Source of the DNA: Basidiobolus meristosporus CBS 931.73
Lineage: Eukaryota > Fungi > Basidiobolomycota
Direction: 5' to 3'
Assembly: GCA_002104905.1 (NCBI GenBank)
Contig: MCFE01000291.1
Coordinates: forward strand, 1 to 64,000
DNA: 64,000 nucleotides
The translations under genes were made by a program, and so were the position numbers. Shown here one piece after another: positions 19,931 through 43,306 of this stretch (the first letter of the stretch is position 1; each line of letters opens with the position of its first letter). The notes under the pieces are model-generated. The model saw nothing but the letters and a program-made list of their open reading frames with translations, had not been told where the DNA came from and made no database searches.

Positions 19931-19959
19931 AAAATATTTCAAGTGAATCCTAACCAAGT

Positions 19960-20760
19960 AATTGGTGCAAATTCTCTAAGATTTGAAGGTAATGCTCCAG
20001 GTGACTAAGCTAGGTGAATGTTCAGGTGCAATTACAGATTTTTATATGTTTTGGTGAACATGCTCCAAGTAAATCCCAACAAGTATCTTGGCTAAACTCT
20101 CTAAGATTTGTAGAGTATGATCTAGGTGACAAAGTTGGGTGAGTATTTAGGTGTGATTACAAAATACACAACAAAAACAAGCATAGTGGTTTGTTTAGGA
20201 ATGTCCCAACAGCATGTGTGCAAGGCTTGGGAGCCTTTGTTGTAAGAGTCTTGGAGATATTGGAAGTGATTGGGAGGACAAGTAGATTATGTGGTTTTCA
20301 CTTAATGATTTATTGGATGTAAAAGTAGTATTTATACTTTTACATGGTCTTGGCATAACAAACACGTAGAATAGGTTAAGAAAGGTCCCAAGAACATGTG
20401 TGCAAAGCTTGGGGCTGTTTGGACAACTTATCAAATTTTCATGTTCTGGGTACCTGGTATTTTGGTGAAAATATTCAAAGTAAATCCCGACAAGGAATTT
20501 GGTCAGTATTCTCTAGGATTTGAGGGTAATGATCTAAGTGACTAAGTTAGGTGAATATTTAGGTGGAATTCCGAATTTTTACAACAGCCTTTAGCCAACT
20601 TTGAGGTTTTTCATTTCCTAGGTACCTAATGTTTTGGTAGAATATCTTCTGTAAGTCCTAACAAAGAATTTTGGCAAGATACACATATATGTAGACTATG
20701 ATCTAATTGACCAAGTCAATAGGATAATTAGGTGTATTTTTAAAATCCACAACAATAAAT
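19960..20760 (-). repeat. Cluster of old LTR pieces: two consecutive LTR 3' halves and one old LTR split by a solo LTR
   Basis: Repeated ctctaagattt...gtgactaag..taggtga..tttaggtg..tacaa motifs at about 19970-20040 and 20050-20172. Sequence at 20185-20237 joins 20592-20755 to rebuild an LTR core. Confidence 0.75.
20238..20586 (-). mobile_element. Solo LTR (349 bp) with perfect 5-bp TSD GCCTT
   Basis: Begins TGTTGTAAGAG and ends TTTTTACAACA; GCCTT at 20233-20237 and 20587-20591; highly similar to the LTRs at 37538 and 41875. Confidence 0.95.
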
Positions 20761-20985
20761 TGGTGTTAAACTAATTTGAAGAAATACCAAAGGATTCATT
20801 CAATTTGAATCATAGCTTACAATTTACCCCAAATAGTCAAGGTTAGCAAAAGACCACAATGAAAGTGCAATAGCTGGTTCTATTTTGCCTTCATTCAGGC
20901 TGATCTACTACATATATTCAATATTGAATAAGCCCGATTAATATCAAAACACTCCTGAAGCAAAACCTATATATTGCATAATCAT

Positions 20986-22344
20986 CTACAACACAGTTGT
21001 CTCGCATGTGTTCATATTAACAAAGGATATATTTCCTTGACTAGCTATAGCAAACAGAACTTCCCCACTGGGCTCTTCAAAACTGATCATACGCCTCATT
21101 GCCAAAGGGTTGGGTATTTCGTCCTCAAATCTACAAAGAAGAAAGTCAGCAAGATAATTAGCATAACTGCCATTTTAGAGAGTTACCTTTGAACAATGAT
21201 ATGAAAGCTGGCGGAACCTGGGTCTTTCTTTCTAAACGTAGGCAGGGGTTTGTAGACATCGTAATCAATCGATACTTTCTCTACCCCAGTCAGAGAGTCC
21301 CATTGGTTTGAGGCGAAGGAGGAGGACAGATACTCTGGAGACTTGGACCTCAAGTTCTTGAAAATATGCTCTATCAAGATATGCAAGTTAGATAAAAATC
21401 ATCCAAATCACATAGTCGTACTTCTACCATATGTTTGATTAGTTAGTGTTATGGGTACTTCAGAGAAGTTAGGAAGAAGCTTCAGGATTGCCTCATAAAT
21501 TGCAGAGGCATATTGTCCAAATGCAGCAAATCTAGCTGTTCCTTCATTCGACATCTCTGCAGGCATGTTATTATGACCAACATTTCGAGCGTACATATGT
21601 GAATATGTACCTGACGCGCTAGACGTTTCTTCCTCACTCCTTGATGGCTTAAGGGCAATATATCCCAATCTTTTTAGATACGCATATACCTAATAAATTT
21701 CGTTCGTTAACAAGGAAGTCACTGAGGTTTAAGGAGTAATACCAACTTGATATTTTTCAAAAGGACAGGACTGAGACAGCAGTGTGGCATAACCTTGCTG
21801 CAATGACATTGGGACGTTGTGATGCAGGATTATCAGCGCGCCTCTCTCTAATAAAAACAATGCTTCTTCCGGATGCAAGAAGATTTTGGCTTTTTCATTA
21901 TATCCCATTGTGTTAAATTGGGTTCCTTTCTTCACGGTGATTTCTACTCTATTCTCAAGAGGTAGCCATATCCCTTGACTCAGCTGACTTGTATTGCATA
22001 AAGCGGAGTCAGTAACACTCGACAAAGTTGTAATTTTGCTGAATACTAACGTATTTGGGATCCGCTCCTCTGATATCACCTCTTGTAATGCTTTCCGCGC
22101 CTCTTTGAGATTTTCCTCGTGTATATCTGAGCCGTCAGGCGCAAAATCTTTCGAACCACGCTTGGGAATGTTGGAGCTACCGCCCTTACTACAGACAGAT
22201 CAGAATCACTTACATGACGAATGAGGCTCGCACATTTCTCACTGAGAAGAAGGAACAAGTGTATGGGTCTCTTGAGATAACGTTACATTACCTTCCCTTC
22301 CCTAATAAAACTCGAAAATCAACCGACTCCTCTTCAAGCTCCAT
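20986..22344 (-). CDS. SEN54: tRNA splicing endonuclease subunit Sen54, multi-exon
   Basis: Exons read MELEEESVDFRVLL, IPKRGSKDFAPDG, GTQFNTMG...LHPEEALFLLERG...PMSLQQGY...KYQV, YAYLKRLGYIAL and VLFAIASQGNISFV; these match the Sen54 N- and C-terminal motifs. Confidence 0.85.
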
Positions 22345-22639
22345 AGTCGTGTTACAGTAGACCGAATCAAAGAAATTACAAGCATCTTCGTTGATTCTGG
22401 TGGATATTTTCATTAGTCGGTTTTTCTCGAATCATTATACATGTTACGAAACAGATGAATATTATACTCTACTTAAGCTCAATCATATTCAACTAAAGTG
22501 ATTACTCACGATTGCTTAATCATGATATTTCATGAAAATCTTTGTCGAGTAGACCAATCACAGAGCACAGCTTTTTGAATATAGCCCGAAGAAGCCTGCA
22601 TCTCTTCTTTCTTTCTATTCCAACAGTTGCCAATTTAAT
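22345..22639. promoter_or_regulatory. Candidate bidirectional promoter between SEN54 and RPS30
   Basis: Only about 295 bp separate the two divergent start codons (22344 minus, 22640 plus). Confidence 0.55.
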
Positions 22640-22969
22640 ATGGTTAGTGAGCTTTCTTTGTATCAGTAACTCATATGTGTGAACATCCATCGATACGACA
22701 TGCTCCAGATTCGAATACAACTGCCTACAAGCCCCCCCCAAAGCAACATCATACTTAGCATTATATGTATATAGGGTAAAGTACACGGTTCCCTCGCTCG
22801 TGCTGGTAAAGTAAAGTCTCAGTGCCCCAAGGTCGAAAAGCAGGAGAAGAAGAAGAAGAAGACCGGTCGTGCCAAGAAGAGAATCCAATACAACCGCCGT
22901 TTCGTCAACGTCACCAACCTCATTGGTGGCAAGCGTAGAATGAACCCTGCCCCTACTTCCGACAAATAA
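22640..22969 (+). CDS. RPS30: 40S ribosomal protein eS30 (S30); exon 1 is ATG only, intron 22643-22774
   Basis: ATG|GTTAGT...TATAG|GGTAAAGTACACGGT gives [55 protein letters not shown] (65 aa). Missed by the ORF track. Confidence 0.96.
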
Positions 22970-24741
22970 GTTGACTTCCCTTGGGTGAAATGATACCTTG
23001 TTGAAGTAACTTTTATTCAGCGGCTGTTTATATTATCTTTCGTTATCAAAACTGCGCAGTTTTCAATAAATGCCAGGTACACACTACCTGCAGGTTATTT
23101 ATATTACTATTGAATCGAAGTGTGAAGGGCAACTCCAGTCAAATACTTTATTGAAGTGGCCATATTTATCGTGTGGTAAATGCATCTTGAAATGTGAACG
23201 GCTAGTTGTCAGAATGCCTCACAAATCACAACACCGATACAATGGAGCAGTAAATATGTGAATTTTCCGGAGGCCAAAGTACGAATGGTGGTGAGGGTTG
23301 CGGAGGGTGTTGGGAAGTTTGGAGGAATTCTGGTGAGTTACATACGTTACCACTTCCTTCCTACTGACTTTTGAACGCAGTTTTTGAAAGCCTGAAATTC
23401 GGTCCCGCAAATGTCTCGACGTGTTTCGTTCAAATGATTTGAGATGCACTTGCCGTACAAAGTCATCTGAAAGTTACTGGCGTTAGTGGCTACCTCTCAG
23501 CTATAGGATCGGCGTGTGCTTACCTCAGGAACACATTTACCAATAGCACCTGTAAGCTTGGTAACTGATTGTGAAGTGGACTTTGGCAAAGTCATATTAG
23601 AATCTAGTTGGGTCAAGTCAAGAGTGGTGTGCAGATTACTCTATGATGTGACAAAATTTTCCCCATGTGGCTACCATGTAGGATTTCTTTAGCATGTATG
23701 CTCGCATAGTCGATTCGAATAAGCTGATTGGCCCCAATCTACCATTATCCTGAATGGACTGAGGAGCGGTGATTTCTGTGTAAATAGATCAGTATCTCTC
23801 GACATTGATTTCACTACAGAGGTTTCCTATGGTAGTACCAAGGCTATCGATAGCCTTAGCAACGCAGAACTGATATTAGCGCACTGCTCCCTGACGATTG
23901 ACTATTACCAGCGTCAAGGGTTTGTAGTCGTTTGCATCATTCTCACTCAAGTGATAAATGTTTGTTAGTGGCAGCTCAGTGTTTCTCTAACAATCCACAA
24001 GTATTTATGTTCAACCTCATCCATATTGAATGCCTAGGATTTGACTGATTTGGAATTGTAAGCAATCAAGAGTCACAATTTGTCGGATTCCCTGACCCAA
24101 AAGTGGCATTATTGGTCGTCGTAGTCGTTGGATATGACTAGCAAGGGCTACCAATAATACCCCAAGTATTGGCACCTTGTAACTCATCGAATCGTAAGCG
24201 TGACACAGTCACTTCACACCTTTAGAACCATTGCGTGATGCAAATAGCACCACAGCACTGGAGTCTGCATCGACTGATTTGTTGCGTTATCCTCATTGAT
24301 GCCAGCAGAGGCCCAGCAGCTTAGAATATTTAAATTGGTTACACGCATGCCGCTAACGTACTAAATCCACTTTTGCATACTCACCGGGTGGCTGCAGCGT
24401 GAGAGTGGGTAATTGGGAATTTCTTAAGCAAGCATGACCTTGCATTTAGCGGATTCATTGGAGAGGACTGGTATTTGTGATCCGATCTTGTTTGTTCTTC
24501 AATCATACCTACAACCTAGTGACTACCTTCCAATAGCTTGATCTCATAGTTGGATTCCTCAGGAGAGAATCAAGATTCCACAACAGGTCACTCTTTTTTG
24601 AAACCTGTGGGTTCAGGGTTCTCTCGAGATAAATGCTTGAGAGAACCCACTGAAGATTTGATAGTCCCTTCTCATCCATCTGTCTTCGCTAGGGGTATCA
24701 CGACGCTGCCAACAATTTACCAATCCAAAGCTTAGTATTCC

Positions 24742-26254
24742 ATGTCAACTGACGGTGTGCATTCGGTAGCTGAGGGCAGTCTCAATAATGAAGTCTCTCC
24801 ATTGATTGCCAAGGCGACCTATTCAAATGCTGTAGAGAATTTGACTCCGTATGCCTTGTTCGTCGCTGGCTCCCTGGCACTGGGCTCCTTTCAGTTCGGG
24901 TATCATATTGGTGAATTAAACACTCCTCAAGACGTAATCTCCTGTATATCGGTCCCAAAGAACCCGGAAGCCGTTTTTAGCCTTCCTCCATGTATACCCA
25001 TGTCTGAAACTCAATTTGCCTTCGCGGCTTCAATCTTCATTGTTGGTGGCCTAATAGGAAACCTTGTGGCCGCGGATCTAACTAGCTACTTCGGTAGAAA
25101 GAAAACTCTCGTATACAATACTGCTTTCCATATTGTTGGCACTCTACTACTAGGCCTATCCTACGATATTCTCTCGCTTTATACTGGCCGCTTTTTGGTC
25201 GGTATTGGGTGTGGAATTTCCATAGTGGTAGTGCCAGTTTATCTGATTGAAATTGCACCTAGCTCCTATCGAGGACTATTTGGTATGCTTTCTATCATTT
25301 TTTTCTTTGTCATCTAATTAACTTCGGATTATGTCAATAGGCGTGTTCCATCAGATTGGTGTCGTTGGGGGTATCTTAGTGTCCCAAATCCTTGGTTTGT
25401 TCTTCTCAAATGTCCCTGGATGGAGATTTATTCTTTCTTTTTGTTTGATAATCTCTGCCATACAGCTTGTTACCTTCCCGTTCATTGTATGTTCACCACG
25501 CCATTTGTTTACTCTTCCCAACGGGGCTGAGGCAGCCAGAGCTGCTTTAAGTAAACTACGTGGCACTGATGATATTGAGCATATCCTCGCAGATTGGGAA
25601 AAGGAAGATTCGAGAGTCGAAACCGGAAAAGTCTCATTCTATCAAATCTTTACTCAATCTACATACGTCCGTCCGTTACAAATTTTGTTCCTGGTTCACT
25701 TTACGCAACAATTCTCTGGCATCAACTCTGTCATGAATTATTCGACACCCATTCTTCGAGCCAGTTTTCCCGAGACGGCCAAATATATCACCGTGTTGAT
25801 TAACGTTGGTAATTTTGTTCTCACCCTTCTTTCTGGTTACATTATCGAAAGAATTCCACGTCGGCAATTATTCTTCATATCCACTGCGTTGACCGGACTA
25901 TCATGCGCTACACTCTCTTTTGCGCTGTACTTCAATTACAACTATCTTGCAGTGGTGGCAATCATTTCAGTGGTGGCTAGTTTTGCCGTTGGTTTAGGCC
26001 CGCTTCCGTTTATAATACCAATGGAAATATTCAACACTCAAGCAGCTGCCACTGCCTCCTCTTTGGGCCTGATCGCAAACAATGCTGGAAGCTTCATTGT
26101 TGTCTCAATATTCTTCACTCTGCAAAACTGGTTCGGATCCGGAGCTTTCCTTGTCTTCGCTGTTTACCTATTGTTTGCATTCATTGTTTCTTACAAGATT
26201 CTTCCCGAGACTAAGGGAAAATCCCCGGAAGCCATTGCGTCGGAGTGGTTATGA
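24742..26254 (+). CDS. MFS sugar porter, GLUT/SLC2A-like; one intron 25283-25340
   Basis: GSFQFGYHIGELNTP, FGRKKTL, GRFLVGIGCG, EIAPSSYRGLFG, QQFSGINSVMNY, GLGPLPF, PETKGKS; about 12 hydrophobic segments. Confidence 0.93.
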
Positions 26255-27786
26255 GCATTCCAAAGTTTTCGGTCAATTTCTAATCTTTAATGATTATTTT
26301 TAATAAATGAGTATAATACCGTTAATATTTAGACCAGCACTTGGTTACACTCGTTCATGATGCGGTGATGTGAAGTAGTAACGGATTTTAGGAAACAATG
26401 CACAAGTACATGGATTACTCAGTCATTCGTATTGGGATTAGAGGTTGGCCAAGTATGGGCTCAATTTAGATAAATTAAGGTTGTCATTTACCTGACAAAA
26501 CGGGTGAGCGTGGTCACGTTCGCAATGATGCACGCTTAGCTCACAGTACCTGCATAGGAAGTGGGACGCCTGTTCCTTTTGTGCATTTCAAGATGGCATG
26601 TATCGATACGTATCCCTGTATGTCTAGCTTATGTATTTATGCCTGAACTTGAGCTCAGATGATTGGATGGTGTCCCATGTGAATGCAGACCCGGTTTTCG
26701 TTGGTCAATATTCAAGTACGGTGCAGAACATGGTTGCTGTTGGCCTGGCGAAAAGGAATTTTCCCAAAGACACCAAGACTATGATCCAAGAAGGACTAAC
26801 CCCCTACTACAATTATTGTGCACCAAAGACTAGGGTCGACTTATGAATATACACAAAGGACAGGAGGAAAGATATACAGATTTAATCCTTGACTGAGAAG
26901 TGCTGATTGCATCATTCATGGCTACTATCACATTGACCATTGATAGCACCTCTAACATCTATAATAATCATTTTTAATCAAGTGGTTTATCCACAACATA
27001 CCATCAAACTGCCCACCTATGCTATATGTATTCACTAGTAGGTTGATTGCGATATCAGTCATGATCCAACCCCCAGTAGTTTCCCTTACTCATACAGCCT
27101 TTCCCTGGTATAAGCACGATCTATACAGCAGCCAAACTATAGTTGTTTATCTACCAGGAGCCTTCGAAACCTGGTATTGATGCTCTTTACTCTTCCGTTC
27201 ATCCTTATTTCTTGTATAGCAAGATAAGTACTTGCCTACATTGTACCCTCGCCGTTACTAATGCGACAGATCGCCGTTGACACACCTTCCTCTGGCTAGT
27301 TGCAAGAAGTCATGCAATACTTATTTGACGGAGTTTTTGACATCAGACAGATATCGTCATGTAATTGACCTCAATTAGGAATCAAGAAATCAATCATCGG
27401 AGATTTTCCTAGCACACATACAGTTTCATATTTTTCCCGACAACTGACTGGCTTTTTAGAAGGCTCCAATGGCAATGGTCAGGCAGCAACGTATCCTTCA
27501 ATATCTCCACCTCCTTGGCAGTACCTTTTCCAAGAGATAACCCCGGTTCTAACAACACAAGGTCTACTTTACAGAAGTCGGGCGATATTCACCAGTCTTA
27601 GATTGTCATTATTACCTCCAGTCAGGGTTTCTCGAGAGCTCCAATAAGCGAATATCACCTGCTGAGCCACATAATTCTTATCCTTGTCCATACTCATACT
27701 GGTAGGCAAAAGAAGCACAAGTTGGAAAGTTTTTCTACTCCGAAGGCTAATTAGTGTTGTTGGATTATTTATAGACGAAACGATAC

Positions 27787-28671
27787 ATGAGTACACAATA
27801 CTTGGCAGTTGCCAGCACATCCAAGGATAGCAAAGTCTTTGGGGAGAACAATGATACGCCCGAAACGTTAGGAGAACAAGAAATGGTAACTGTGTTTGCG
27901 GATCCGGTCAACTTCAATGTAAAACATCCGCTTCACAGCCAGTGGACTATGTGGTATGACAACCCGGGCAAGAAAGCCAACCAAGCTAGCTGGTCGCAAA
28001 ATCTCAAAGAAATCGTTACCTTTGATACTGTCGAGGATTTCTGGGGGTAAGCTTTTCCGCAGATACCGTAGCACCCCCAGCATGGCTTGATCTAATTTTC
28101 GTTCAACTCAATTCAGTATATACAACAATGTTGTTCGGCCAAGTGATTTATTACCAGGCTCAAACTATCACCTATTTAAGACCGGCATCAAGCCCATGTG
28201 GGAAGACCCTTCCAATGCCAACGGTGGCAAATGGGTAGTCCAGCTTCCCAAGAGGACTGGCGAGCATATCAACACACTTTGGCTGTACATTGTAAGCTTG
28301 TATCATGTCGAGTATCTGGATACAGTCACCAGTTAACGTTCATCCCTGTGTTTATCAGATGCTCGAGTGTATTGGTGAGGGATTCCAATACGAACACGAG
28401 GTATGCGGTGGAGTTGTATCCATCCGGAAAGGTTTTTATCGTATATCTCTATGGATGCGTATCGCCAACAACAAAGAAATTTGTGAGTCTATAGGGTAAC
28501 TATTCTCCGCCTTTCAATCAACGGCCGATGTTTCTAATGGACCTTTTCTGTACGTGTAGTCGTCATCTGAAATCCACACTCTCTCTCCAACCTAACCAGA
28601 CCATCGAGTTTCAATCACATTCTGACGCTGTCAAGAGCGGGTCGTGTAACAAGGATCGTTACACTTTGTAG
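27787..28671 (+). CDS. eIF4E: Cap-binding translation initiation factor eIF4E (class I), 4 exons
   Basis: KHPLHSQWTMWY, SW, TVEDFWG, YHLFKTGIKPMWEDPSNANGGKW, VCGGVVSIRKGFYRISLW; ends DRYTL*. Confidence 0.96.
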
Positions 28672-29494
28672 GCCTATTCTATCAGCAACCTCGCCCCTAA
28701 AGAATAATCTAACAAATGGGCAGAAATCACCCCTCCCGCTCGCTCACCAAAACAAGCCACAGGATCACTGTCTTTTACCCTTTTTGTGTTTTTGGAAATC
28801 TCTTTGCATTGTTCAAGCAGGAGCAAATAAAATATGTGTATTGGCAGCTCTAACACGTACCCTTTCCCCTTCATACTTCCTTCCCTAGCTGACATGCCCT
28901 AGGGTTGCTTAGTCACTGTTGGCCAGAAATTGGAAACAGCGACGACTGGCTCTACAAGTAAACACATTTTGCTCCTGTGACAATTATAAGCATTGTCTTT
29001 GGCTGTTCTTTATTGCAGAAGTTTGTACCGTCCGACCAATGGCTTTACAGATGTATTTACCACATGTATATCTCGGTCCAAGTGATTGATATGTGGCTTC
29101 GATGTTAGTGGGTAAATTTAGCCCAAGCGTGCCAGGCATTCTATGGATAATACTTGATGTCAACTATGATTAGGCCCATTCCAACCCCATATTTTCTTTC
29201 CCAAGCTGCATCCTATAAATAGTGTGATTTCCTCGGTTGAATATGTTGGGATTCAATATCGGCTTTGGCTAAAAATATCTCAATTCCTAACAACGATACC
29301 CGATTTCCCGTAGCATTTCGAATTGATCCAAACAATGTTTCGTGTGATGATAATCAACAATATACCACCCTTACACACATCCCCAATTCCAGGTTGGGCG
29401 GTTTTTTTACTCAGGAACTGAATTAATAGCACGGAAGCCTAGCGTTATCGCCAGATTCAGGTTTTTCTGCCTTTATTTTGCCCTCTTGTCTACC

Positions 29495-30355
29495 ATGTCT
29501 CTCGTGTCTGTAAGTACACCTGCCACCTGGCTTTTATCATCTTGTAGGCGCTTGGTTTCTAAACGTCTTTTTCTGGGATTCCCCCAATGTTTGCAACTGA
29601 TGTTAGGATCCTCAAATCGAATCCGCTTACGAAGATGTCAGAAATGGTACGTATTGCTCTGTGTTGTGGCAGTGAAATCATCAAGTTAATCATCCTTTTA
29701 TATAGATAAATCTGATACCAACTGGTTGACATAGGCTTCTATGTGTCGGTTATTTTTGAAGCTTACTAACTTCAAGCTTGATGTAGGCTTCTTCTGACCT
29801 ACGCTGCGGATAAGCGTGATGTACTTGAAGTCAAGGCTACAGGTATGCTAAAAGGCAGATGTAGCACCTCTTGCATTCTTTTCAACATGCTTACCTCTAG
29901 TGCTCAAACAGGAACTGGTGGTCTCTCCGAATTCGTTGACAACCTGGAGCCTGATCAGGCTGCCTTTGGTTATCTTCGGTAAATATTCTGACAGCAATAA
30001 TTTGATGTGAGCATCAACTGACATCTTCGTCCGTACCCTTTAGTATGGTCATTTCCAATGATGAATTATCTCAACGCGTCAAATTTGTATTCGTCTCCTG
30101 GTGCGGACCTGCCGTAAAGGTTATGCGTAAGGCTAAACTGAGCGTAAGCATGCTGCCTAGATATCCATAGTGCATGTTCCACCAGGTCTAATATCAACCA
30201 TCTAGGTTCACGTCTCTGGAGTTCGACAAGTACTCAGAAGCTACGCCATTGAGATTTCTGCCTCCGATCTTCACGATCTCGAGGAAAAGGAGGTTACCCT
30301 CTTGTTGAGAAAGGCATCTGGGGCCAACTACGATAGACAAAAGAGCGACTACTAG
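29495..30355 (+). CDS. Single ADF-H domain actin-binding protein (coactosin/drebrin-like), 7 exons including 15- and 19-nt microexons
   Basis: Spliced product MSLVS|DPQIESAYEDVRN|DKSDTNW|LLLTY..LEVKATG|TGGLSEFVDNL..QAAFGYLR|..SQRVKFVFVSWCGPAVKVMRKAKLS|VH..YAIEISASDLHDL..KASGANYD; intron phases are consistent. Confidence 0.85.
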
Positions 30356-31775: not shown

Positions 31776-33452
31776 TTTGGATAACTCTTGAGCGCTCAGC
31801 AAAGTCCTCGATTTATATATGGATCCTGGTAAAACAAATGATGTATGTAAACTGGCTATCGATATGGGAATTTTTTGTTGTATAACACGCATCTTTTAAT
31901 ACATCTAGAGTAATGATAGCAGCTGAACTGTGCCGATAGAGGGGAGTATCTCTTGAAATATCATCGCTTCGTTTCTAGTTTCAATATCCTGGGATTCAGG
32001 TGCACATCAAGATACTACTTGATTGATTGCCCTCCCCATGAGGCAAATACCAATAGAATAAAATCCATGCTTTCTCTCAATTGACATCTCTATTTTGACG
32101 CGCCTCAATCCCTTTTTTCAATAGTCATGGTCACGTAGATCAATTTATGTTTATAGGAATCTATTGACGTTGGACTCAAAGAACGCAGCAAACTTGCCAT
32201 TTTAATAGCACGTCAATCATTTCAGTTTATTGACCACAAGAACAGGACTGTGGAATCCAAGTCCGATTCGGACTCCAATTCGATCACGGTTAATCGAAAT
32301 CGCACCCAGGAACCGTATCACAACTATCATTCTGGTATTGGCAGGCCAACTTGGAGGGTTTCGGTAGTTCGTGCATTCAACGAGATTACTGCATTCGTAA
32401 TACTTGAGTAGGGCGATCACGGGGCGTTTTTGGAAGAATTTTGTATGCACAACTGGTTGGCGAAATTCCTGATCCCTTAATAAATATCGGAAATCCGATC
32501 CCGGATTGATTGCGAGACTGGCGGGTTTTCCGAGGCTCATTCCGGATCACTTCGCCCCGCTTCATTCTGGAATTTTGATGCCTAAGCGGGATTGGTGTCA
32601 TGAAAAGCCAACGTATCGGAATGGAAATGGTCAACTAATGAGTCGGTAATGAATAGCCTATAAAAATCTCACAAAATGCGGAGAAGTTGACAAATTGGGA
32701 TTCGGTCCTCGAGGGTCCGGATTGAGCACAATTCTGAACTTTTATTTGTTCGGTTGATGGTTGCTGCATCCTAATATCCATACCAAAGGGCAGTTGTGCC
32801 ACCTGGGCTACTCCAATTCTCACCTGATATATCTCGAGTCGATGGAACACCCGAGACCTGCGTAACGGTCAGCATATCCATTTGACAGAAGTAATTTCCT
32901 GCAGATTCGGGGTGGACAACTCTACAGCATTCAAAGGTCATGTTACGTGGCCCAAAATGATAATCTCCTATTTGTCGACTCGACAGCCAAGCACAGCGGA
33001 GCCAAACAATCCGGCTAGCTAGGCTGATCAGGGATACTTGCTAGGCAAGGCAGATACTATTCGCTCCAGTATGGATTTCTTCCGTGCCCATCAGTTATTG
33101 CAGCTCTATCGGCTGGAGTTTGGCGGGTTGTGGGAATTCTGATTTCTGGATGACGTCGTTGCTGCCGAATATCTATGGGGGATCCCATTGCAGAATGATA
33201 TTAGAGTTCTACATGGATAAATTCTCAACTTTGAAACAGGTATAGCGCGAAAGGAAATTCATAATATACACATTCCGGATAATCAACCACCAATTCATCC
33301 CCACGACCAGTATCACCGAATAGCTGCTACGATATTATCTTCTATACACATGCGTAGTACCAATGGCAGGCGAACCACAACGGTCAATATAAATTACGTG
33401 CCAACGTTTCCTTGTTGACCAACGCACCCGTTCTCTTCTCATTTGGACCGAC

Positions 33453-34895
33453 ATGAGCCTATTCAGACAACCCGTCCTTCGCACTGCCTCCTTAAACAGA
33501 GCCTTGTTCAGAAGCTCTCGTAGAACACTCTTCACAAAGAAGACTCCCAAAGTGGTAACTGCCGATGAAGCCGTCACTGTGGTAAAGGACAACGACCGCA
33601 TCTATTTGCATGGTGTCGCTGCTTTCCCCCGCGCTTTGTCTCTGGCTCTTGCCAAGCGTTACGCAGAGCTCAAGAACGTGGAATGTATCCATATCCACAT
33701 CGAATCCCCAAATCCCATGTGTGCGTTGACCGCTACTACCCAGATGGCCGACCAATTCCCCGTTCCCCCAACTGTCGAGGACATGAGAAAGGCTTTCTTC
33801 GTCAACAATTTCTTTGTTGGTCCCAACCAAAGAGCCGCCGTTCGTGAAGGCTACTCCAGCTACGTCCCATGCTTCTTGAGCGAATTGCCCAAACTGATGC
33901 GCAAGGACATTACTCGTCCCAATGTTGCCATGTTGAACGTCTCGCCTCCTAACAAGCATGGCTTCGTGTCGCTCGGTGTCGAAGCCTGTACTTCCATCGC
34001 TGCCATCGAGACTGCCGATATTGTAATTGCTCAAATCAATCCCAATATGCCACGCACCCACGGTGATGCATTGGTGAATATCAACCATTTCGATTACATT
34101 GTTCCTGATGTGGATGAGAAGCTGCCAGAGCATTTCAGCGGCTCGATGACCAACGCCGATCGTGAGATTGGAAGAATCATTGCTGGGTTGATTGATGATG
34201 GCTCCACACTTCAAATGGGTATCGGTGCCATCCCTAACGCGGTTCTCTCCTCGTTGACCAACCACAAGAACCTTGGTGTCCACACTGAGATGTTCCAAGA
34301 GGGTTTGATTCCTCTTATGGAGAAGGGCATCATCACCAACAGAAACAAGAAGTTCCTTCCAGGAAAGGTTGTCACCTCCTTTGTTGTTGGCAGCAAGCGC
34401 CTTTATGACTTCATTGATGACAACCCAGAGGTTGCTTTTGTTGACGTTAGTGTCACCAACGACCCAGTTGTTATCGCCAGTAATCCCAAGGTAGCCGCCA
34501 TTAACGCTGCTATTGAGGTTGACATTACCGGTCAAGTATGTGCTGACTCTGTAGGAACCAGACATATCTCCGGTGTTGGTGGCCAAGTTGACTTTGAACG
34601 TGGTGCTGCCATGAGCGAAGGTGGTGTTCCCATCATCTGCCTTCCTTCAACCACCAAGGTAAAGGGCAACCCCGAGGCTGTTGGTGAATCCAAGATCGTT
34701 TCCACCTTGAAATTGGGAGCTGGTGTAGTTACCTCCAGATACCATGCTCATTACATCGTCACTGAGTACGGCTATGCTTACCTATTCGGCAAGAACTTGA
34801 TGCAACGTGCCAGAGCAATGATCGACATTGCTCATCCTGATCACCGTGAGGAACTTCACAAGGCTGCATATGAACGCTTCAAGGTCCTCGTTTAA
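33453..34895 (+). CDS. Acetyl-CoA hydrolase/CoA-transferase (family I, 4-hydroxybutyrate CoA-transferase/ASCT-like) with probable mitochondrial presequence, intronless
   Basis: 480 aa; Arg/Ser-rich, acid-free N-terminus (MSLFRQPVLRTASLNRALFRSSRR); LQMGIGAIP, LGVHTEMF, AAIEVDITGQVCADS, SGVGGQVDFERGA, VTEYG. Confidence 0.92.
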   Translation: MSLFRQPVLRTASLNRALFRSSRRTLFTKKTPKVVTADEAVTVVKDNDRIYLHGVAAFPRALSLALAKRYAELKNVECIHIHIESPNPMCALTATTQMADQFPVPPTVEDMRKAFFVNNFFVGPNQRAAVREGYSSYVPCFLSELPKLMRKDITRPNVAMLNVSPPNKHGFVSLGVEACTSIAAIETADIVIAQINPNMPRTHGDALVNINHFDYIVPDVDEKLPEHFSGSMTNADREIGRIIAGLIDDGSTLQMGIGAIPNAVLSSLTNHKNLGVHTEMFQEGLIPLMEKGIITNRNKKFLPGKVVTSFVVGSKRLYDFIDDNPEVAFVDVSVTNDPVVIASNPKVAAINAAIEVDITGQVCADSVGTRHISGVGGQVDFERGAAMSEGGVPIICLPSTTKVKGNPEAVGESKIVSTLKLGAGVVTSRYHAHYIVTEYGYAYLFGKNLMQRARAMIDIAHPDHREELHKAAYERFKVLV

Positions 34896-36199
34896 AGAGA
34901 ACCCCTTCCCCTACCACGAGTCAATCTATCACCAATCCCTTGCATTCATTCATTGAAGTCAACCATCATATTGTAAAAAACACAGTCATTAAATCAATGA
35001 TCCCACAATACAACCATTGACACTCCTGATCGGAGTTAAGAAACTTGGATATATATAGATATGGATATAGCGATGTTGGAGCTCGTATGTTTAATCATTG
35101 GGGCATTGAGTGACTTCCGTAATACCTCAAACCTTACACAGGTAGTTTGCTTCGGGTAAGCTCACCGAAGTCCAGCAACATCCCTTTGGATCTCACACTC
35201 AAATTGTTGCAACGAGTGCAATCCACATACATCACACAAGGCTCTCCGAACAATAAAGGGGAAGAGCCCAGAAACCCTACAGTAGGCTCATCATGGTTCT
35301 GCCGTACACCACTCCAAGTGGATATTAAGCGCCTTTCCAGGAGGCTGATTCTTTCTATTGTATAGGATAGGGCAGGGAGAGTCGTTGCACATGTAGTTGA
35401 CTTGTTGGAATTTGAAAGATCAAAGATGATTTGTTGTGCTAGATGAACCGATCTCGAAACTTTTGGGTTCTGTATTGCACTTTTGCACCTCAGCTTATAT
35501 TTCTATGTACACTAGATGCCAACGTGCTTACATGAAATGTGGCACCGATATCGTTGGCCTGAAACATCTACTAATCAGTTTGGGGGCGAGGTGTGCATAC
35601 TCCATGCATTCATCCACAGTAGTCACCTATCAATATGGTAACAATTTCATCTAGACACCCCTAGTAGTAGTTTCAACCCGGGGTTTCTGCTGATCTTGTT
35701 GGTAATATAGTCATATGGTGTTGTGTTGATATTTCAACACACTTACCAGTAACTGTATAGCATTGCTCATACTGTTCAAAAAGTTTGGCTATGGTTCATG
35801 ATTTTATTCATGGGTTCAAAATCAGATTCCTTGATTCTGGTACGCCTGCCTTAAGGTTTCGTTAAATAGCCTCCCACTTTCCACCTCCACTACATATACT
35901 TCTAAAGTAGATGCATTCATATTTGCGTCATATTTTTGAGCTACAATATATGCCTCATTTACATGTAAATAACTGGCATCCCATATACCATTTGTAGTTA
36001 CTAGTTTTCCACCTAAATAATTTGTGTACCAGAACTCTTCCTTTATAATTGCACAAATCTTGCATATTATTGTAGACCTCAGTTTGTATAATGTATACAA
36101 ATTCCCCGAATATTCCGGGGATTACCAGTAATTTCTGAATCATCCTAAAGATACCCAAACCTCACAGCTTTGGGGGCTTCACTCAATAACTATATGCTT

Positions 36200-36900
36200 A
36201 AATTCGACTCAAGAGCACAAAAAGCAAGAATCACACTTTCTAACCATAATTTCAACCACATCCATTATCATAACATTCCACCAGCAGAGCTTGCTCAGTG
36301 TACATTCTAGAACTGCAGCCTGAAAATCTGGTTTCTCTCTGCGTGATGGTATTCCAAGTACTAAATTCTAGACTTTTGGTGGGGTCATCAACTAGCACAT
36401 TAAATACATGGAAGTCTTGGCCAGCATTTTTACAAAAATTCTGATTCTTATTACTGCTTACCAGCTCAATCAATCTACTGATAAAAGCCACATGATTGCA
36501 CGGCTCACAATCACTCCCATATCTCTTAGCCATGATGCTACACTAACAGCCATAAACTATAGTCTGGCTATTGCATCAGAGAGCAGGAGCAGCTTATCTT
36601 CAAATATTGGAGATAAAACATAATTACACAAGCTATTGATTGCATTGTTGACAAGTTTTGCCAATATTACAGGTAATTGGACAAATAGTTGAGTAAGTAG
36701 TTTTCACTTAATAACTCATAATGTGTAAAAGTGAAGCTTATACTTCTTCAAGGTCTTGGCAGAACAAACACAGAGAATATGCGGAGAAAATGCTTAGGAT
36801 TATGTGTGCAGTGTTTGGGGGCTTTTGGTGAGCTTTGATGTCTATGACACCTACAATGTTAGCAAAAATATTCCATGTGCATTTCAATATATATTTGGGC
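36200..36900 (-). mobile_element. Decayed PIF/Harbinger-like DDE transposase fragment
   Basis: FANIVGVIDIKAHQKPP (36867-36815, cf. FPNCVGAIDGTHI), LMTPP (36391-36377), VLECTLSKLCWW (36313-36278, cf. VECAFGxLKxRW); CpG-poor and interrupted by stops. Confidence 0.45.
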
Positions 36901-37887
36901 TGGAAATGGTATATTTCATTAGCTTTAGTCCAAATGGTCATGCTAATGTATGCTTTTATGTATTGATACAAACCTAGCAATAAATCACACAATATCACTT
37001 CCCTGCTGAAAACTCTCAGTACTTAATAGCAAATATCCTGAGTGCTTTCATATATCTGAGAATTTTGAGTTTACACCCAGATCTTCCATTAACTTTTTTG
37101 GTCAGATTCTTGGAGATATTGAAATTGGTTGGGAGAATAGGTAGACTATGTGGTTTTCACTTGGTAACTTACTGAATGTAAATGTAGTATATATGTTATT
37201 ACATGGTTTTGGCAAAATAAGTATGTAGAATATGCTTGGGAAGGTCCCAAGAGCATATTTGCAAAGCTTGGGGCTGTTTGAGCAACTCTGAGAAATCTCA
37301 TGTTCTGGGTACCTGATATTTTGGCAAAAACATTTCAAGTAAGTCTAACAAGGAATTTGATCAGAATTCTCTAAGATATGTATGTTATAAGAGTCTTGGA
37401 GATATTGGAAGTGATTGGGAGGACAAGTAGATTATGTGGTTTTCACTTAATGATTTATTGAATGTAAAAGTAGTATTTATACTTTTACCTGATCTTGGCA
37501 TTACAAACACGTATAATAGGTTAAGGAAGGTCCCAAGTGTTGTAAGAGTCTTGGAGATATTGGAAGTGATTTGGAGAACAAGTAGATTATGTGGTTTTCA
37601 CTTAATGATTTATTGAATGTAAAAGTAGTATTTATACTTTTACATGGTCTTGGCATTACAAACATGTAGAATAGGCTAAGGAAGGTCCCAAGAACATGTG
37701 TACAAAGTTTGGGGCTGTTTGGACAACTTTGAGAATTTTCATGTTCTGGGTACCTGGTATTTTGGTGAAAATATTCTAAGTAAATCCCGACAAGGAATTT
37801 GGTCAGTATTCTCTAGGATTTGAAGGTGATGATCTAAGTGACTAAGTTAGGTGAATATTTAGGTGGAAAATACGAATTTTTACAACA

Positions 37888-37897
37888 CTCCCACTCA
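37888..37897 (-). other. Polypurine tract (TGAGTGGGAG) preceding the 3' LTR
   Basis: Plus strand ctcccactca lies directly beside the LTR; a similar ttcccactc follows the old LTR at 18541. Confidence 0.85.
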
Positions 37898-37898
37898 G

Positions 37899-40800
37899 CT
37901 AAATGTTCATACTGACTAGTCCTAATTTTGACCTAAAATATTCAAACTTGTCTCTAGCTAATGGTTTGGTAAATATGTCTGCAATCATTTCATCTGTAGG
38001 ACAGTAAACTAAGCTAACTAAGTTATTCTCTATAGCTTCACGTATGAAATGATGTCTAATATCTATGTGCTTGGTTCTAGCATGAAAAGTTGGATTTCTA
38101 CCTAATTGTATACATCCTTGATTATCTTGAAATAAAGTAATAGGCGTTTTTTGACACAGGCCTAAATCTGTAAAGAGCTTTCTTAACCACATTGCTTCTT
38201 TTGTAGCTTCACAGGCTGCCATATACTCTGCCTCTGTAGTAGAAAGTGCTACGGTTGGTTGCTTTCTTGAATTCCATGAAATGGCTCCTTTACAGTAAAG
38301 AAAGGTGTATCCTGTGGTGGATCTTCTGTCTTCTAAATTTTGTCCCCAATCAGCATCAGAGTATCCCACAAGATCCTGTTCTGAATCCTTATAAGTGTAT
38401 CTTAAGCAGATATCAGCAGTTCCTTTTAGGTATCTAAAAATCCGCTTAACTGCTGCAATATGATCAGATCCATAATTCTGATTATGTTGGCTGACAACTC
38501 CCACTGAATATGAGATATCTGGACGTGTTCCAAGCATGATATACATCAGACTGCCGACCATAGATTGATAAGGAAAGTCAGGGCTTTCAGATGGCACCAA
38601 GCTCTCTTGATTTGGTTGAGTTTTGACCAAGTTAAGGTTTGTCTCCATTGGGGTAGCTGCTGGTTTACAGTCTTCCATTTTGTACTTCTTTAGTATATCT
38701 TGAATATACTTGGATTGACTTAGGGTAATAGTCTGGGTACTTCTGTCTATGGAGAACTTAATCCCTAAGTAGTAACTAAGTTCTCCTAGATCGGACATCT
38801 TGAACTCCTTAGATAGGCTGGATTTAGTCTCTTCCAATGTTTCTAGGTTATTGGCGGCTATAATAAGATCATCCACATATAGAGCTAATAGAACTGGATT
38901 TGCTCTATCTGGCTTATAGTATATACTATAGTCAGCATTACTCCTTTTGAAACTCAAAGATTCCAAATAAGAATCTATCTTGCAATTCCAGGCTCTCAGG
39001 GATTGTTTGAGACCATATAGTGACTTTTTAAGCTTGCAGACCAAATGGGGGTTATCTTGGTCAACAAACCCATCAGGCTGGTCCATATACACGTCCTCAT
39101 CAAGTTCTCCATTCAAAAATGCAGTTTTTACATCCATTTGATGAATAAAAAACTTATATTTGGCTGCAATAGCCAATATTAATCTGATGGAATTAAACTT
39201 GGCTACCGGTGCAAAGGTCTCAGTATAGTCAAGTCCTTTTGTTTGAGAGTATCCTTTGGCTACAAGTCTTGCTTTGTATCTTTCAATTGTACCATCAGCC
39301 TTGTATTTTGTCTTGAAGACCCATCTGCATCCAATTGATTTTTGGTTGATTGGTAATTTGACTAAGTCCCAAGTTTGATTTTCCATCAGTGCCTGATATT
39401 CCTCAGTCATTGCAGATCTCCAAAACTTCATCTGAGGGCTATTTAGGGCCTCCTTTACAGTCTGTGGCTCATCAACATGGACTGAATAGGCATAGGCTAA
39501 GTTTGTACCCTCATTGATATAGTAATTTGGGCTATTTCTTGTCTGATTGGATCTCCGGGCATTTGGTACTGGAATGATCACTTCTGGGATATTCCTGGGC
39601 ACTGATTCTGGCTGAACCACGGTTGTAGAGTCCTCTGGAGTGAAAAAATTTTCATTGTTTTGCTCTGATTCAATCCTGACAATTGGTGGACTTGAGATCA
39701 GATTTTTATCATCATCTGATGTCATTTTTTGTGAAAATTTTGAATTTTCATCAAACAACACATCCCTGGACTTGATCAGCTTCTTTGCTTTGGTATTGTA
39801 GAGTCTGTATGCCTTACTCTCATTGCAGTAGCCCAAAAATATGCATTTTACACTTTTTGGCTCAAATTTTGACTGATTTCCGGCCAGTTTTTTGGCATAT
39901 GCTGTACACCCAAATATTCTTAGATGTTCTGCACTTGGTCTGTATCCATACCATGCTTCAAATGGAGTAGAATCACAAAGTATTCTGTTATAACTCCTAT
40001 TTTTAAGATATACAGCAGTGGCAACTGATTCCGCCCAAAAATCATAGGATAATTTTTGATCATGGATCATAGATCTTGCCATATCAATTATTGATCTGTT
40101 AGCTTGTTCTGCTACTCCATTTTGCTGTGGGGAGTATGGTACAGTAGTCTCTTGCTTTATCCCATGAATTTTGCAGAAGTGGATGAAGAGTTTTGAGGTA
40201 TATTCTCCACCATTGTCAGAGCGTATTTTCTTGATTTTTTCACCAGTTTCTCTCTCCACCATGGCTTTAAACTCCCTGAGCTTAGACAGAGCTTCTTCCT
40301 TTCTCTCCATGAAGTAGACCCATGTGTATCTTGTATAATCATCAATAAAAGTGATTAAATACTTCATCCCGCCTAAGGATAAATTTTGCATAGGTTCACA
40401 CAGATCTGAGTGAATTAGATCTAATTTTTTCTTAGTTTTGATTAACCCAGAGCTCTTGAACGGTTGTCTGGCTTGTTTCCCATATATGCAGGCTTCACAG
40501 TGCTCCAAAATAGCTGGGGGATCAATTTTCACTCCAGAAATTAGCTGATCTTTGATCATTTTACGCAAATAATCAAAATTGATGTGTCCAAATCTCCTGT
40601 GCCAAAGCATTGGTGTTTCTTCATTTAAGTTACTTATATTGGCTTCCAGATATGATGGAATATAAGTCAACTTGTATAGGTTCTGATCTCTGATGCCCGA
40701 AGCAATATGAGCACCATTTTGATCAGTGATCCTGCATCCAGAATTGTCAAAACTGAAACTGAGTCCTTCTGCTGTGGCCTTGCTTACAGAGAGTAGGTTC

Positions 40801-41870
40801 TTGGCTATTTCTGGTACATAGAGTACTTCTTTAAAGGTCAGTGTATGGCTTCCTTCACTGCTTCTAAGGTTTACTTGGATAGTTCCTTCTCCCACTGCAT
40901 CAAGTGTTCTATCGTCACCCATGAAAACCTTCTTAATTGGAATTTCTTGATATTGGGTAAAAAGTTCTTTTTGGTGTGTAAAGTGTTGAGAACCTCCAGA
41001 GTCAATATACCACGTCTGAGAATCCTTGTTTGTGGTCATATTTAGTGCAGATATGAATAGTCTATCTTCAGTTGTTGCAGCATTTCCATATTCAGGCTTC
41101 TTTTGCTGATAATCTCTCTTTTTGAAACACCGGTCTGATGTGTGTCCTTTCCTTTCACAGTAGTTGCAAAATAGGTTGCTGTTGCCTTTGTAGGGTCTTG
41201 GGTACCTCCTTTGTTGGTTATCATTGCTTATTAAAGCATTTTCTTCTTCCTTCTTATTGGTGCTTGATTTTCTTAATTCTTCATCCAGGAGCCTTCCATA
41301 TATGTAATTTAAGGTCAAATCTTCAGTTCTGGACTCTAGGGCTGATACAAGGCCCTGAAACTCATCTGTCAGGCTATTCAGGATGGTAACTATCACATCC
41401 TCATCAGTAGTTGGTACGCCCACAGATTTCATCTCATCTACCAGCAGGGTAATTCTGTTAATTAGATTTTTCATTTCTTCTCCTGGCAGCATCTTTGTAG
41501 TAAAGAATTTTCTTCTCAGATACATTTTCTTGGCAGCTGAACATGACTGGTAGGTGTCTTCTAATGCCTTCCAGGCATTCTTTGCCGTTTTTGCTCTTGC
41601 GCATTGAATTAGCAATTTGTCCTTGACATTAAGGCAAATGCAGTTAAAGGCACTTTGTTCTTTCTTCTGGTACTTTAAGGCTTCCTCTCCCACGTTTTTA
41701 GCAGGGCATTCTTCTCCCATGACAATATCCCAAAGGCCTCTTTCTTGCAGCAGCATCTTCATCTTCACCTTCCACACTTGGTAGTTAGATCCATCCAACT
41801 TTTCAGCAGAGGGAAAAATTCCAGTAATAGCAGTAGTAGACATTGCAGAGAGTGACAGCTTGGGGCTCAT
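37899..41870 (-). CDS. Copia Gag-Pol polyprotein (Gag, Zn knuckle, protease, integrase, RT, RNase H) in a single ORF; start probably 41870 or 41843 rather than 42002
   Basis: NYQVWKVKMK..GLWDIV; CNYCERKGHTSDRC; WYIDSGGSQH; WHRRFGH..CEAC; LIHSD..FIDD..SDNGGEY..QNGVAE; HQMDVKTAFLNG..YGLKQ..LYVDDL; YSDADW..STTEAEY..TKHIDIRHHF..ADIFTK. Copia domain order (integrase before RT). Confidence 0.97.
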   Translation of the reverse strand: MSPKLSLSAMSTTAITGIFPSAEKLDGSNYQVWKVKMKMLLQERGLWDIVMGEECPAKNVGEEALKYQKKEQSAFNCICLNVKDKLLIQCARAKTAKNAWKALEDTYQSCSAAKKMYLRRKFFTTKMLPGEEMKNLINRITLLVDEMKSVGVPTTDEDVIVTILNSLTDEFQGLVSALESRTEDLTLNYIYGRLLDEELRKSSTNKKEEENALISNDNQQRRYPRPYKGNSNLFCNYCERKGHTSDRCFKKRDYQQKKPEYGNAATTEDRLFISALNMTTNKDSQTWYIDSGGSQHFTHQKELFTQYQEIPIKKVFMGDDRTLDAVGEGTIQVNLRSSEGSHTLTFKEVLYVPEIAKNLLSVSKATAEGLSFSFDNSGCRITDQNGAHIASGIRDQNLYKLTYIPSYLEANISNLNEETPMLWHRRFGHINFDYLRKMIKDQLISGVKIDPPAILEHCEACIYGKQARQPFKSSGLIKTKKKLDLIHSDLCEPMQNLSLGGMKYLITFIDDYTRYTWVYFMERKEEALSKLREFKAMVERETGEKIKKIRSDNGGEYTSKLFIHFCKIHGIKQETTVPYSPQQNGVAEQANRSIIDMARSMIHDQKLSYDFWAESVATAVYLKNRSYNRILCDSTPFEAWYGYRPSAEHLRIFGCTAYAKKLAGNQSKFEPKSVKCIFLGYCNESKAYRLYNTKAKKLIKSRDVLFDENSKFSQKMTSDDDKNLISSPPIVRIESEQNNENFFTPEDSTTVVQPESVPRNIPEVIIPVPNARRSNQTRNSPNYYINEGTNLAYAYSVHVDEPQTVKEALNSPQMKFWRSAMTEEYQALMENQTWDLVKLPINQKSIGCRWVFKTKYKADGTIERYKARLVAKGYSQTKGLDYTETFAPVAKFNSIRLILAIAAKYKFFIHQMDVKTAFLNGELDEDVYMDQPDGFVDQDNPHLVCKLKKSLYGLKQSLRAWNCKIDSYLESLSFKRSNADYSIYYKPDRANPVLLALYVDDLIIAANNLETLEETKSSLSKEFKMSDLGELSYYLGIKFSIDRSTQTITLSQSKYIQDILKKYKMEDCKPAATPMETNLNLVKTQPNQESLVPSESPDFPYQSMVGSLMYIMLGTRPDISYSVGVVSQHNQNYGSDHIAAVKRIFRYLKGTADICLRYTYKDSEQDLVGYSDADWGQNLEDRRSTTGYTFLYCKGAISWNSRKQPTVALSTTEAEYMAACEATKEAMWLRKLFTDLGLCQKTPITLFQDNQGCIQLGRNPTFHARTKHIDIRHHFIREAIENNLVSLVYCPTDEMIADIFTKPLARDKFEYFRSKLGLVSMNI

Positions 41871-41874
41871 AACC
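41863..41874 (-). other. Primer-binding site GGTTATGAGCCC, complementary to the anticodon arm of initiator tRNA-Met (half-tRNA priming type)
   Basis: It directly abuts the 5' LTR; the plus strand reads GGGCTCATAACC, the conserved tRNA-iMet anticodon stem-loop sequence. Confidence 0.9.
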
Positions 41875-41965
41875 TGTTGTAAGAGTCTTGGAGATATTGG
41901 AAGTGACTTGGAGAATAAGTAGATTATGTGGTTTTCACTTAATGATTTATTGAATGTAAAAGTAG

Positions 41966-41973
41966 TATTTATA
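41966..41973 (-). promoter_or_regulatory. Candidate LTR TATA box (TATAAATA), with AATAAA at 41951-41946
   Basis: The motifs are conserved in the young LTR copies and lie downstream of the 42002 ATG on the coding strand. Confidence 0.5.
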
Positions 41974-43225
41974 CTTTTACATGGTCTTGGCATTACAAAC
42001 ATGTAGAATAGATTAAGGAAGGTCCCAAGAACATGTGTGCAAAGTTTGGGGCTGTTTGGACAACTTTGAGAATTTTCATGTTCTGGGTACCTGGTATTTT
42101 GGTGAAAATATTCTAAGTAAATCCCGACAAGGAATTTGGTCAGTATTCTCTAGGATTTGAAGGTGATGATCTAAGTGACTAAGTTAGGTGAATATTTAGG
42201 TGGAAAATACGAATTTTTACAACACCAAAAACATGTGTGCAAAGTTTGGGGCTGTTTGAACAACTTATCAAATTTTCATGTTCTGGGTAAATATTCTGAG
42301 TAAATCCCGACAAGGAATTTGGTCAGTATTCTCTAGGATTTGAAGGTAGTGATCTAAGTGACTAAGTTAGGTGAATATTTAGGTGGAAATATGAATTTTT
42401 ACAACAATGTAGACTACAATTTAAGTAACTAAGTTGGTGGAATATTTAGGTGTAATTATAAGACATACAACTTTGTCACTTATATCATTTTCTGTGAACT
42501 TCACTACTGGTCAAATTCCTTTGTTGTTTGATTTTCCATAGTTTGGTCAAAATGTCAAGCACATAGTGCACGTAGGTTAAATACAATGCCTAATAGACAC
42601 CAAAATCTGTACATGTACTTCTGCAACCTCTAAAGCATACCATACAGGCTTATTTTGCCAAGATCATGGAGAAGTATGGAGACCACTTTTTATTCCAAAG
42701 ATCATCAAGTGAGAGCCACATCACCTTGTTACTTCTGTTACTTGGGATATCTCCATGGCTGTGATATCACCATGATATTTTATTTATAGTTGTCAAGATA
42801 CTGTCAATATTTGGCAGAGCTTGTAGAGTATATCAATTTTGTTGTAATCATTTAACTTTCACCTAAACCACTCAAATATTCCCTAAGAAACAAAATCAAG
42901 AAAAGGCCAGCAGAGTACCATCATAATGATAGCTAAATTCCCAGTATCGCAAATATGACAACTCTCCATATCTCAGGTACCAGCTGTTGGGCACACCAGC
43001 AGATAAATTCTCTTGAAGGAGACTATGCCAACTTGCAATCAGACCAAACTTGGCAATCAGCTGATTACAACTTATGCCAAAAATTGCAACTAAAAGTTTA
43101 AGGACAAAACACCAGCTAAATACCAGCAAAATATCATTGGAATACCAGCTGAAAAGCAGATGAGTTGCAAGTTTGAGAGTCTTCATTAGGATTGTAATAT
43201 TATACTGGGCTTATTACTAAGTTTT

Positions 43226-43306
43226 TGTTGTAAAAAAGTTGTAATTCCACCTAAATATTCACCTAACTTAGTCAATATTTAGGTGGAATTCCAAATTTTT
43301 AAAACA
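43226..43306. repeat. Fold-back (inverted) junction of LTR terminal sequence
   Basis: AATTCCACCTAAATATT-cacctaacttagtc-AATATTTAGGTGGAATT is a perfect 17-bp inverted repeat, flanked by TGTTGTAAAA...TTTTAAAACA. Confidence 0.8.

Follow-up and report, generated by a model that had tools for sequence, protein, structure and literature searches.

Nested insertions of a Ty1/copia lineage in two CpG-depleted transposon islands of Basidiobolus meristosporus

Results

Architecture of the window and the intact element B3

The stretch analysed here (hereafter the window) comprises 64,000 nt of Basidiobolus meristosporus CBS 931.73 (contig MCFE01000291.1), to which all counts below refer. Within it, a Ty1/copia retrotransposon lineage, represented by one intact young element (B3) and by layers of older long terminal repeats (LTRs), nests in two small transposon islands (A and B) amid gene-rich DNA; the bias in where copies are found appears to lie at the level of the islands rather than of LTR sequence. 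The surrounding genes encode Sel1-repeat, peroxiredoxin, NDT80, sugar transporter, Sen54, acetyl-CoA hydrolase, WD40, SAPS, DnaJ/TPR and F-box/LRR proteins. The host open reading frames (ORFs) are exact matches to NCBI/eukprot proteins, and the acetyl-CoA hydrolase clusters at 90% identity with a Basidiobolus ranarum protein. The excess of long ORFs outside the islands (ORFs of ≥80–100 codons, relative to the shuffled expectation) amounts to 30–40% of the sequence, which is a lower bound for coding DNA there; the non-genic, non-island space of the window is perhaps ~15–25 kb. No transposon family other than the copia lineage was detectable among the proteins and remnants of the whole window.

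B3 has the structural hallmarks of a Ty1/copia element: direct LTRs with TG…CA ends (TGTTG…CAACA), an adjoining primer-binding site (PBS) and polypurine tract (PPT), and a flanking 5-bp target-site duplication (TSD; CCAAG at 37533–37537 and CCAAA at 42225–42229, with one mismatch). Its LTRs are 98.6% identical, the five differences all being transitions; the 5′ LTR, read in the sense direction, carries TATAAA at position 252 and AATAAA at 274. Pfam analysis of the polyprotein located Retrotran_gag_2 (residues 81–249), Pol_BBD (331–413), gag_pre-integrs (442–510), rve (530–625), SH3_retrovirus (685–755) and RVT_2 (875–1120). The resulting order of gag, protease, integrase and reverse transcriptase (RT)/RNase H, with an RT of the copia type, is that of the Ty1/copia group (Pseudoviridae), and the integrase is of the DDE type, not a tyrosine recombinase. 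The anticodon stem-loop of initiator tRNA-Met is complementary in sequence to the PBS. The longest form of the B3 ORF (start at 42002) opens within the 5′ LTR; a gag ATG at 41870 or 41843 is the more likely start.

None of four versions of the polyprotein, each beginning at a different possible start codon, has an exact match in the protein collection, and in a word search of the same collection nothing came closer to the full polyprotein than 47% identity. For the RT–RNase H piece there was one match of 78%, on a 1.9-kb ENA contig, the remaining matches being ≤56%. Conserved 23- and 24-mers of the LTR had no matches in two scans of metagenome contigs. Evidently the copia family is not gene-called in the public annotation, though the host genes of the window are. 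A copia-type RT protein (RVT_2) of a JGI metagenome contig is listed with a chromodomain (PF00385), a combination unusual for Ty1/copia.

LTRs nested within LTRs

LTR positions are counted on the young LTR in the sense direction of the element, and insertions were checked by self-BLAST, direct sequence reading and a script. At island B, B3 splits the solo LTR B2 at positions 196–200. B2, which has an exact TSD (ATGTA at 37378–37382 and 42407–42411), splits the older LTR B1 at positions 64–68, and B1 in turn sits at positions 41–45 of the oppositely oriented B4, again with an exact TSD (ACTTT at 37092–37096 and 42470–42474). Joining the B4 flanks restores an uninterrupted LTR alignment across the junction, and the left piece of B4 (43 bp) is significant by itself with the LTR profile (nhmmer E = 9e-5). 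The island B locus is a four-layer nest, B3 in B2 in B1 in B4. At island A, the young solo LTR A6 splits the older A5 at positions 169–173 and is flanked by an exact TSD (GCCTT at 20233–20237 and 20587–20591).

A sequence-only reading of the window had proposed that the young insertions A6, B2 and B3 each interrupt an LTR of their own family, at differing internal positions, and that LTR sequence makes up little of the window. The three insertions, their TSDs, the differing positions and the small LTR share (4.3 kb) are borne out by our analysis. The statement on the family holds for B2 as a target (94% identity), but A5 and B1 belong to older related lineages (72–80%).

In addition to these four TSD-bearing events, there are three half junctions of an LTR with the interior of another, none with a TSD pair: the A3 terminus abuts A4 at ~130, the A4 terminus abuts A5 at ~232 (where the 3′ part of A5 ends), and B8 abuts B5 at ~48. 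Such half junctions would fit leftovers of recombination between nested, like-oriented LTRs. B8 forms a small palindrome with the first 48 bp of B5 and is probably the remnant of a mostly deleted inverted insertion.

The four TSDs share no common consensus, and no insertion site is reused among the LTR junctions of the window. All seven LTR-into-LTR junctions lie in the U3 region, upstream of TATAAA; U3 makes up ~71% of the LTR, such that seven of seven is not a significant excess (P ~0.09). Three junctions (41–45, ~48 and 64–68) fall within LTR positions 41–68 and flank an AGATC at 53–57, a clustering which is suggestive only. In orientation, five of the junctions are the same as their target and two are opposite; the bias is not significant.

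The remaining LTR and copia pieces of the islands are given in Table 1. Within island A, the minus-strand copy A1 stops in gag positions 832–891 where the plus-strand copy A2 opens with a complete LTR terminus. The A2 gag reaches position 774, and the two opposite-strand halves are thus nearly contiguous in element coordinates (19255–19938); the junction could have arisen by insertion into gag or by an inversion long ago.

Table 1. Coordinates of the islands, of element B3 and of the LTR and copia pieces in the window (LTR positions in the sense direction; identities of A6 and B2 relative to the B3 LTR).
Feature	Position	Strand	Details
Island A	17400–21000		CpG-depleted; CpG observed/expected 0.00–0.18
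A0, LTR fragment	17931–18086	+	
A1, LTR	18178–18542	−	
A1, pol 3′ end	18543–19256	−	
A1, gag fragment	19255–19314	−	
A2, LTR	19315–19610	+	
A2, gag 5′ end	19609–19938	+	
A3, 5′ LTR portion	19931–20044	−	LTR positions 1–120
A4, 5′ LTR portion	20046–20173	−	LTR positions 1–130
A5, old LTR, two parts	20174–20237 and 20592–20757	−	~72% identical
A6, young solo LTR	20238–20586	−	349 bp, TGTTGTAA...TTACAACA; 94.6% identical
Island B	36000–44700		CpG-depleted; CpG observed/expected 0.00–0.28, B3 included
B0, very old LTR fragment	36655–36899	−	~69% identical; profile
B4, oldest layer, left 50 bp	37047–37096	+	~65% identical; joined alignment, nhmmer
B1, older LTR, left part	37097–37382	−	~80% identical; LTR profile/alignment
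B2, solo LTR, left half	37383–37537	−	Positions 196–350; 94–95% identical
B3, intact young Ty1/copia element	37538–42224	−	4687 bp; self-BLAST, Pfam, LTR comparison
B3, 3′ LTR	37538–37887	−	350 bp
B3, PPT	37888–37899	−	GCTGAGTGGGAG
B3, single intact ORF	37899–42002	−	Likely start codon 41870 or 41843
B3, PBS	41863–41874	−	GGTTATGAGCCC
B3, 5′ LTR	41875–42224	−	350 bp
B2, solo LTR, right half	42230–42406	−	Positions 1–195 with an 18-bp deletion
B1, right part (5′ end of LTR)	42412–42469	−	Alignment
B4, right part	42475–42769	+	Positions ~46–350; alignment
B7, terminus	42840	+	
B5, old LTR	43226–43573	+	
B8, inverted LTR 5′ terminus	43271–43306		36 bp, within B5 at ~48
TGTTGTAA terminus	43592	+	
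B6, old LTR	43828–44165	+	

Clustering of the family in the two islands

A profile of the LTR found 20 significant pieces, equal to 6.7% of the window, and every one of them lies within 17931–20757 or 36655–44165; the profile found no significant piece in the other ~51 kb. Thirteen of the 14 exact terminal octamers are likewise in the two islands (3.65 being expected by chance in the window). ORF-free DNA outside the islands, at least several kb of it, is as devoid of family copies as the ordinary genes. Under uniform insertion over the window, the probability that three of three young events strike LTR-like DNA is ~1.5e-4; tested against 15–25 kb of non-genic, non-island space it is ~1e-3 to 3e-3. 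When 10–15 events were simulated as uniform over 8–25 kb of neutral space, with the target growing upon insertion and events ≤500 bp apart counted as the same island, 5–11 islands arose on average, with P ≤ 0.002 for two or fewer. The island-level clustering is robust and far beyond the neutral expectation.

Inside the islands the picture is different. LTR-like DNA makes up ~42% of the pre-insertion island sequence, and amongst ~14 resolved events seven abut an LTR, one borders on copia sequence from inside the element (the terminus of A2, at 19315, next to the gag fragment of A1) and six abut unidentified island DNA; LTR strikes are therefore in no clear excess over LTR content, and for the three young events the within-island P of hitting an LTR is ~0.09. 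Since ~42% of the islands is LTR and about half of the events strike LTR, homing on the LTR as such is not shown, and the specificity for the element's own LTR that had been suggested from the three insertions is not supported. The accompanying proposal, that the preference is regional rather than sequence-specific, is supported by the four TSDs lacking a consensus, the four different LTR positions, the CpG depletion of the landing areas and a clustering well above that predicted for neutral insertion into non-genic DNA. No other transposon family in the window can serve as an unhit control, and so a preference for the own LTR and one for any silenced transposon are confounded here.

CpG depletion, RNA polymerase III genes and the integrase tail

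In an analysis by 600-bp windows, strong CpG depletion is confined to the two islands. The ratio of observed to expected CpG is 0.05–0.11 for old debris and 0.18 for B3, compared with 0.7–0.9 in genes and other non-coding DNA; in the islands GpC is normal and TpG/CpA are raised. This is the footprint expected of CpG methylation, from which we infer a methylated state. B. meristosporus encodes a protein of the CDCA7 family, a family that the authors of 10.1101/2023.01.30.526367 link to DNA methyltransferases. Repeat-induced point mutation of the Neurospora type was considered as the source of the CpG loss and rejected, the corresponding indices being normal. The depletion reaches several hundred bases past the outermost LTR pieces (17400–17930, 36000–36650 and 44170–44700), and these flanks may be either unrecognised older transposon debris or neighbouring DNA into which methylation has spread. 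Elsewhere, a stretch downstream of the peroxiredoxin gene (6900–8700) is AT-rich (32–33% GC) and mildly CpG-depleted (observed/expected 0.25–0.34); it is without LTR or copia similarity.

ARAGORN predicted no tRNA gene in the window, no Rfam family reached its gathering score there, and searches of both islands and their surroundings at E ≤ 1 found no relic of a tRNA, 5S or U6 gene.

The tail of the B3 integrase reads KNLISSPPIVRIE. It contains LISSPP (ORF residues 768–773; 39684–39701, minus strand), 13 residues past the SH3-like domain, which overlaps a PIVRI pentapeptide in the sequence LISSPPIVRI (residues 768–777; 39672–39701, minus strand). LISSPP fits the LxSSxP pattern of Ty5. PIVRI resembles PxVx[LI], the kind of motif bound by HP1 chromoshadow domains, although such a reading of it is speculative; a pentapeptide of the PxVx[LI] type is estimated to occur by chance in ~9% of 120-residue tails.

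Discussion

The locus is best explained as one in which a single Ty1/copia lineage would have entered the two islands at least ~15 times by integrase-mediated insertion with 5-bp TSDs, new copies either landing in, or persisting in, CpG-depleted transposon debris. With LTR debris making up so much of the islands, most young insertions would necessarily interrupt an LTR. The mechanism we favour, with confidence balanced evenly between belief and doubt, is the targeting of silent chromatin by a tethered integrase; we infer active tethering from the extreme clustering, the lack of solo LTRs in other non-coding DNA and the frequency of targeting amongst retrotransposons of compact genomes, which generally evolve active targeting (PMC5006619). 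The tether, probably the disordered C-terminal tail of the integrase (residues ~756–874), would engage some silent-chromatin feature, in a manner akin to that of Ty5 with Sir4 or of chromoviruses with H3K9me, and with every insertion the safe harbour open to later copies would grow.

Several observations weigh against this interpretation. Pfam found no chromodomain (PF00385) or other chromatin-reader domain in the B3 polyprotein, and not one of 107 full-length relatives has the pattern L.SS.P anywhere in the protein; Sir4 is not known outside budding yeasts. The CpG depletion could merely follow from the islands being transposon sequence, in which case it would not prove an attraction to silent chromatin. 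Even the youngest element has an LTR divergence of 1.4%, such that selection has had time to clear insertions elsewhere. As regards the statistics, the extent of neutral intergenic DNA is a rough estimate, and the insertion events are not independent and come from a single 64-kb window.

The foremost alternative, one that the sequence-only reading had itself raised, is random integration followed by purifying selection, in which only those copies that happened to fall into dead transposon debris were harmless enough to persist; we regard this as possible but rather unlikely. The gene-richness of the window, where the excess of long ORFs sets a minimum for the coding share, speaks for such survivorship, the five LTR differences of B3 show that some time has passed since the youngest insertion, and the lack of a clear excess of LTR strikes over LTR content inside the islands is equally compatible with it. 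However, selection alone would have to remove even solo LTRs of 350 bp from essentially all of the remaining intergenic DNA: zero LTR fragments lie in the ~51 kb outside, versus at least 15 events in ~7 kb of islands, and the simulated probability stays at or below 0.002 even when just 8 kb of space is taken as neutral.

A true homing of the element on its own LTR, with a U3-bound host factor or a favoured zone at ~40–70 attracting the integrase in the manner of Tf1 and Sap1, appears doubtful. The location of every LTR-into-LTR junction in U3, the three junctions around AGATC and the fact that all four TSD-bearing events are in LTRs point in its direction, and the Tf1/Sap1 system provides a precedent (PMC5371812). 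Against these stand the large share of the LTR that is U3, which leaves the U3 location short of significance, the absence of a reused site, the mixed orientation, the approximately half of resolved events that abut non-LTR island DNA, and the within-island P of ~0.09 for the three young events. A more specific version, in which the family homes on the U3 of its own (methylated) LTRs, perhaps at a hot zone of ~40–70, by means of a short linear motif with which the integrase tail would bind a silent-chromatin protein of the host, seems to us improbable to much the same degree; LISSPPIVRI, with its LxSSxP-like and PxVx[LI] patterns, would be the candidate stretch.

Entry independent of the integrase is very improbable, whether through cDNA that recombined with, or converted, resident LTRs or through a DIRS-like recombinase. 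The cDNA and resident LTRs share homology, and Ty and Tf elements (PMC5371812) as well as DIRS-1 (PMC5006619) are known to use pathways of this sort. However, the 5-bp TSDs of the four TSD-bearing events lie at positions without homology, and complete LTR termini are joined to internal LTR positions, which shows integrase-mediated insertion; the element also encodes a DDE integrase and no tyrosine recombinase. For these four events the recombination pathways are refuted. That the copies stack as a by-product of targeting to the same tRNA gene, as Ty1, Ty3, DGLT-A and Tj1 target genes transcribed by RNA polymerase III, is barely conceivable and is refuted for the window, which holds no such gene or relic.

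Comparison with characterised systems places the locus in a known kind, that of retrotransposons in silenced clusters, with U3-rich junctions and small interstitial islands as its particular features. We know of no Sir4 partner in the Basidiobolus lineage. The closest parallel is with Ty5 of Saccharomyces, which targets silent chromatin via a C-terminal hexapeptide of its integrase that binds Sir4 (PMC7459421). Both elements are of the copia superfamily, and both have copies in silenced-looking DNA, which is judged here from CpG depletion. The likeness extends to the PBS, with its complementarity to initiator tRNA-Met at the anticodon stem-loop, and to an LxSSxP-like LISSPP in the integrase tail. 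The two differ in their targets, small interstitial islands of transposon DNA here as opposed to telomeres and mating loci for Ty5, and the motif is absent from all 107 full-length relatives retrieved.

In Schizosaccharomyces pombe, Sap1 guides the integration of Tf1/Tf2 and also binds a conserved site within the LTR of these elements, which documents one way for LTRs to draw in new copies (PMC5371812). Tf1, however, is a Ty3/gypsy element that targets RNA polymerase II promoters, and the insertion positions in the Basidiobolus LTRs are scattered. In Dictyostelium, the chromovirus Skipper and DIRS-1 accumulate in their own heterochromatic transposon clusters, and DIRS-1 has a preference for existing DIRS-1 copies as insertion targets (PMC5006619). 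The Basidiobolus copies likewise pile up in pre-existing transposon clusters that look silenced, but their element is without the chromodomain of chromoviruses and, in contrast to DIRS-1, uses a DDE integrase with TSDs and no tyrosine recombinase; moreover, its islands are a few kb in size and lie between genes, not at centromeres. Plant LTR retrotransposons show same-family 'autoinsertions' above the random level, with LTRs not commonly targeted and 3′ UTRs preferred (PMC6911290). Same-family nesting is shared with the window, the resolved junctions of which are mostly in the LTR U3 and the genome of which is compact. Tp1 of Physarum has also reportedly been found to nest in hypermethylated repeat DNA (Rothnie et al. 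1991).

We know of no account of integration targeting in Zoopagomycota. If selection alone explains the pattern, the locus is an instance of the ordinary nested-transposon picture of many genomes. Should homing on U3 through a motif of the integrase tail prove true, it would constitute a self-reinforcing safe harbour in an early-diverging fungus and the first Ty1/copia case outside budding yeast. If integration is truly directed to the islands, the family would provide a tractable case of a retrotransposon that persists in a compact fungal genome without striking genes, and a second copia example beside Ty5, from an abundant and apparently still intact family.

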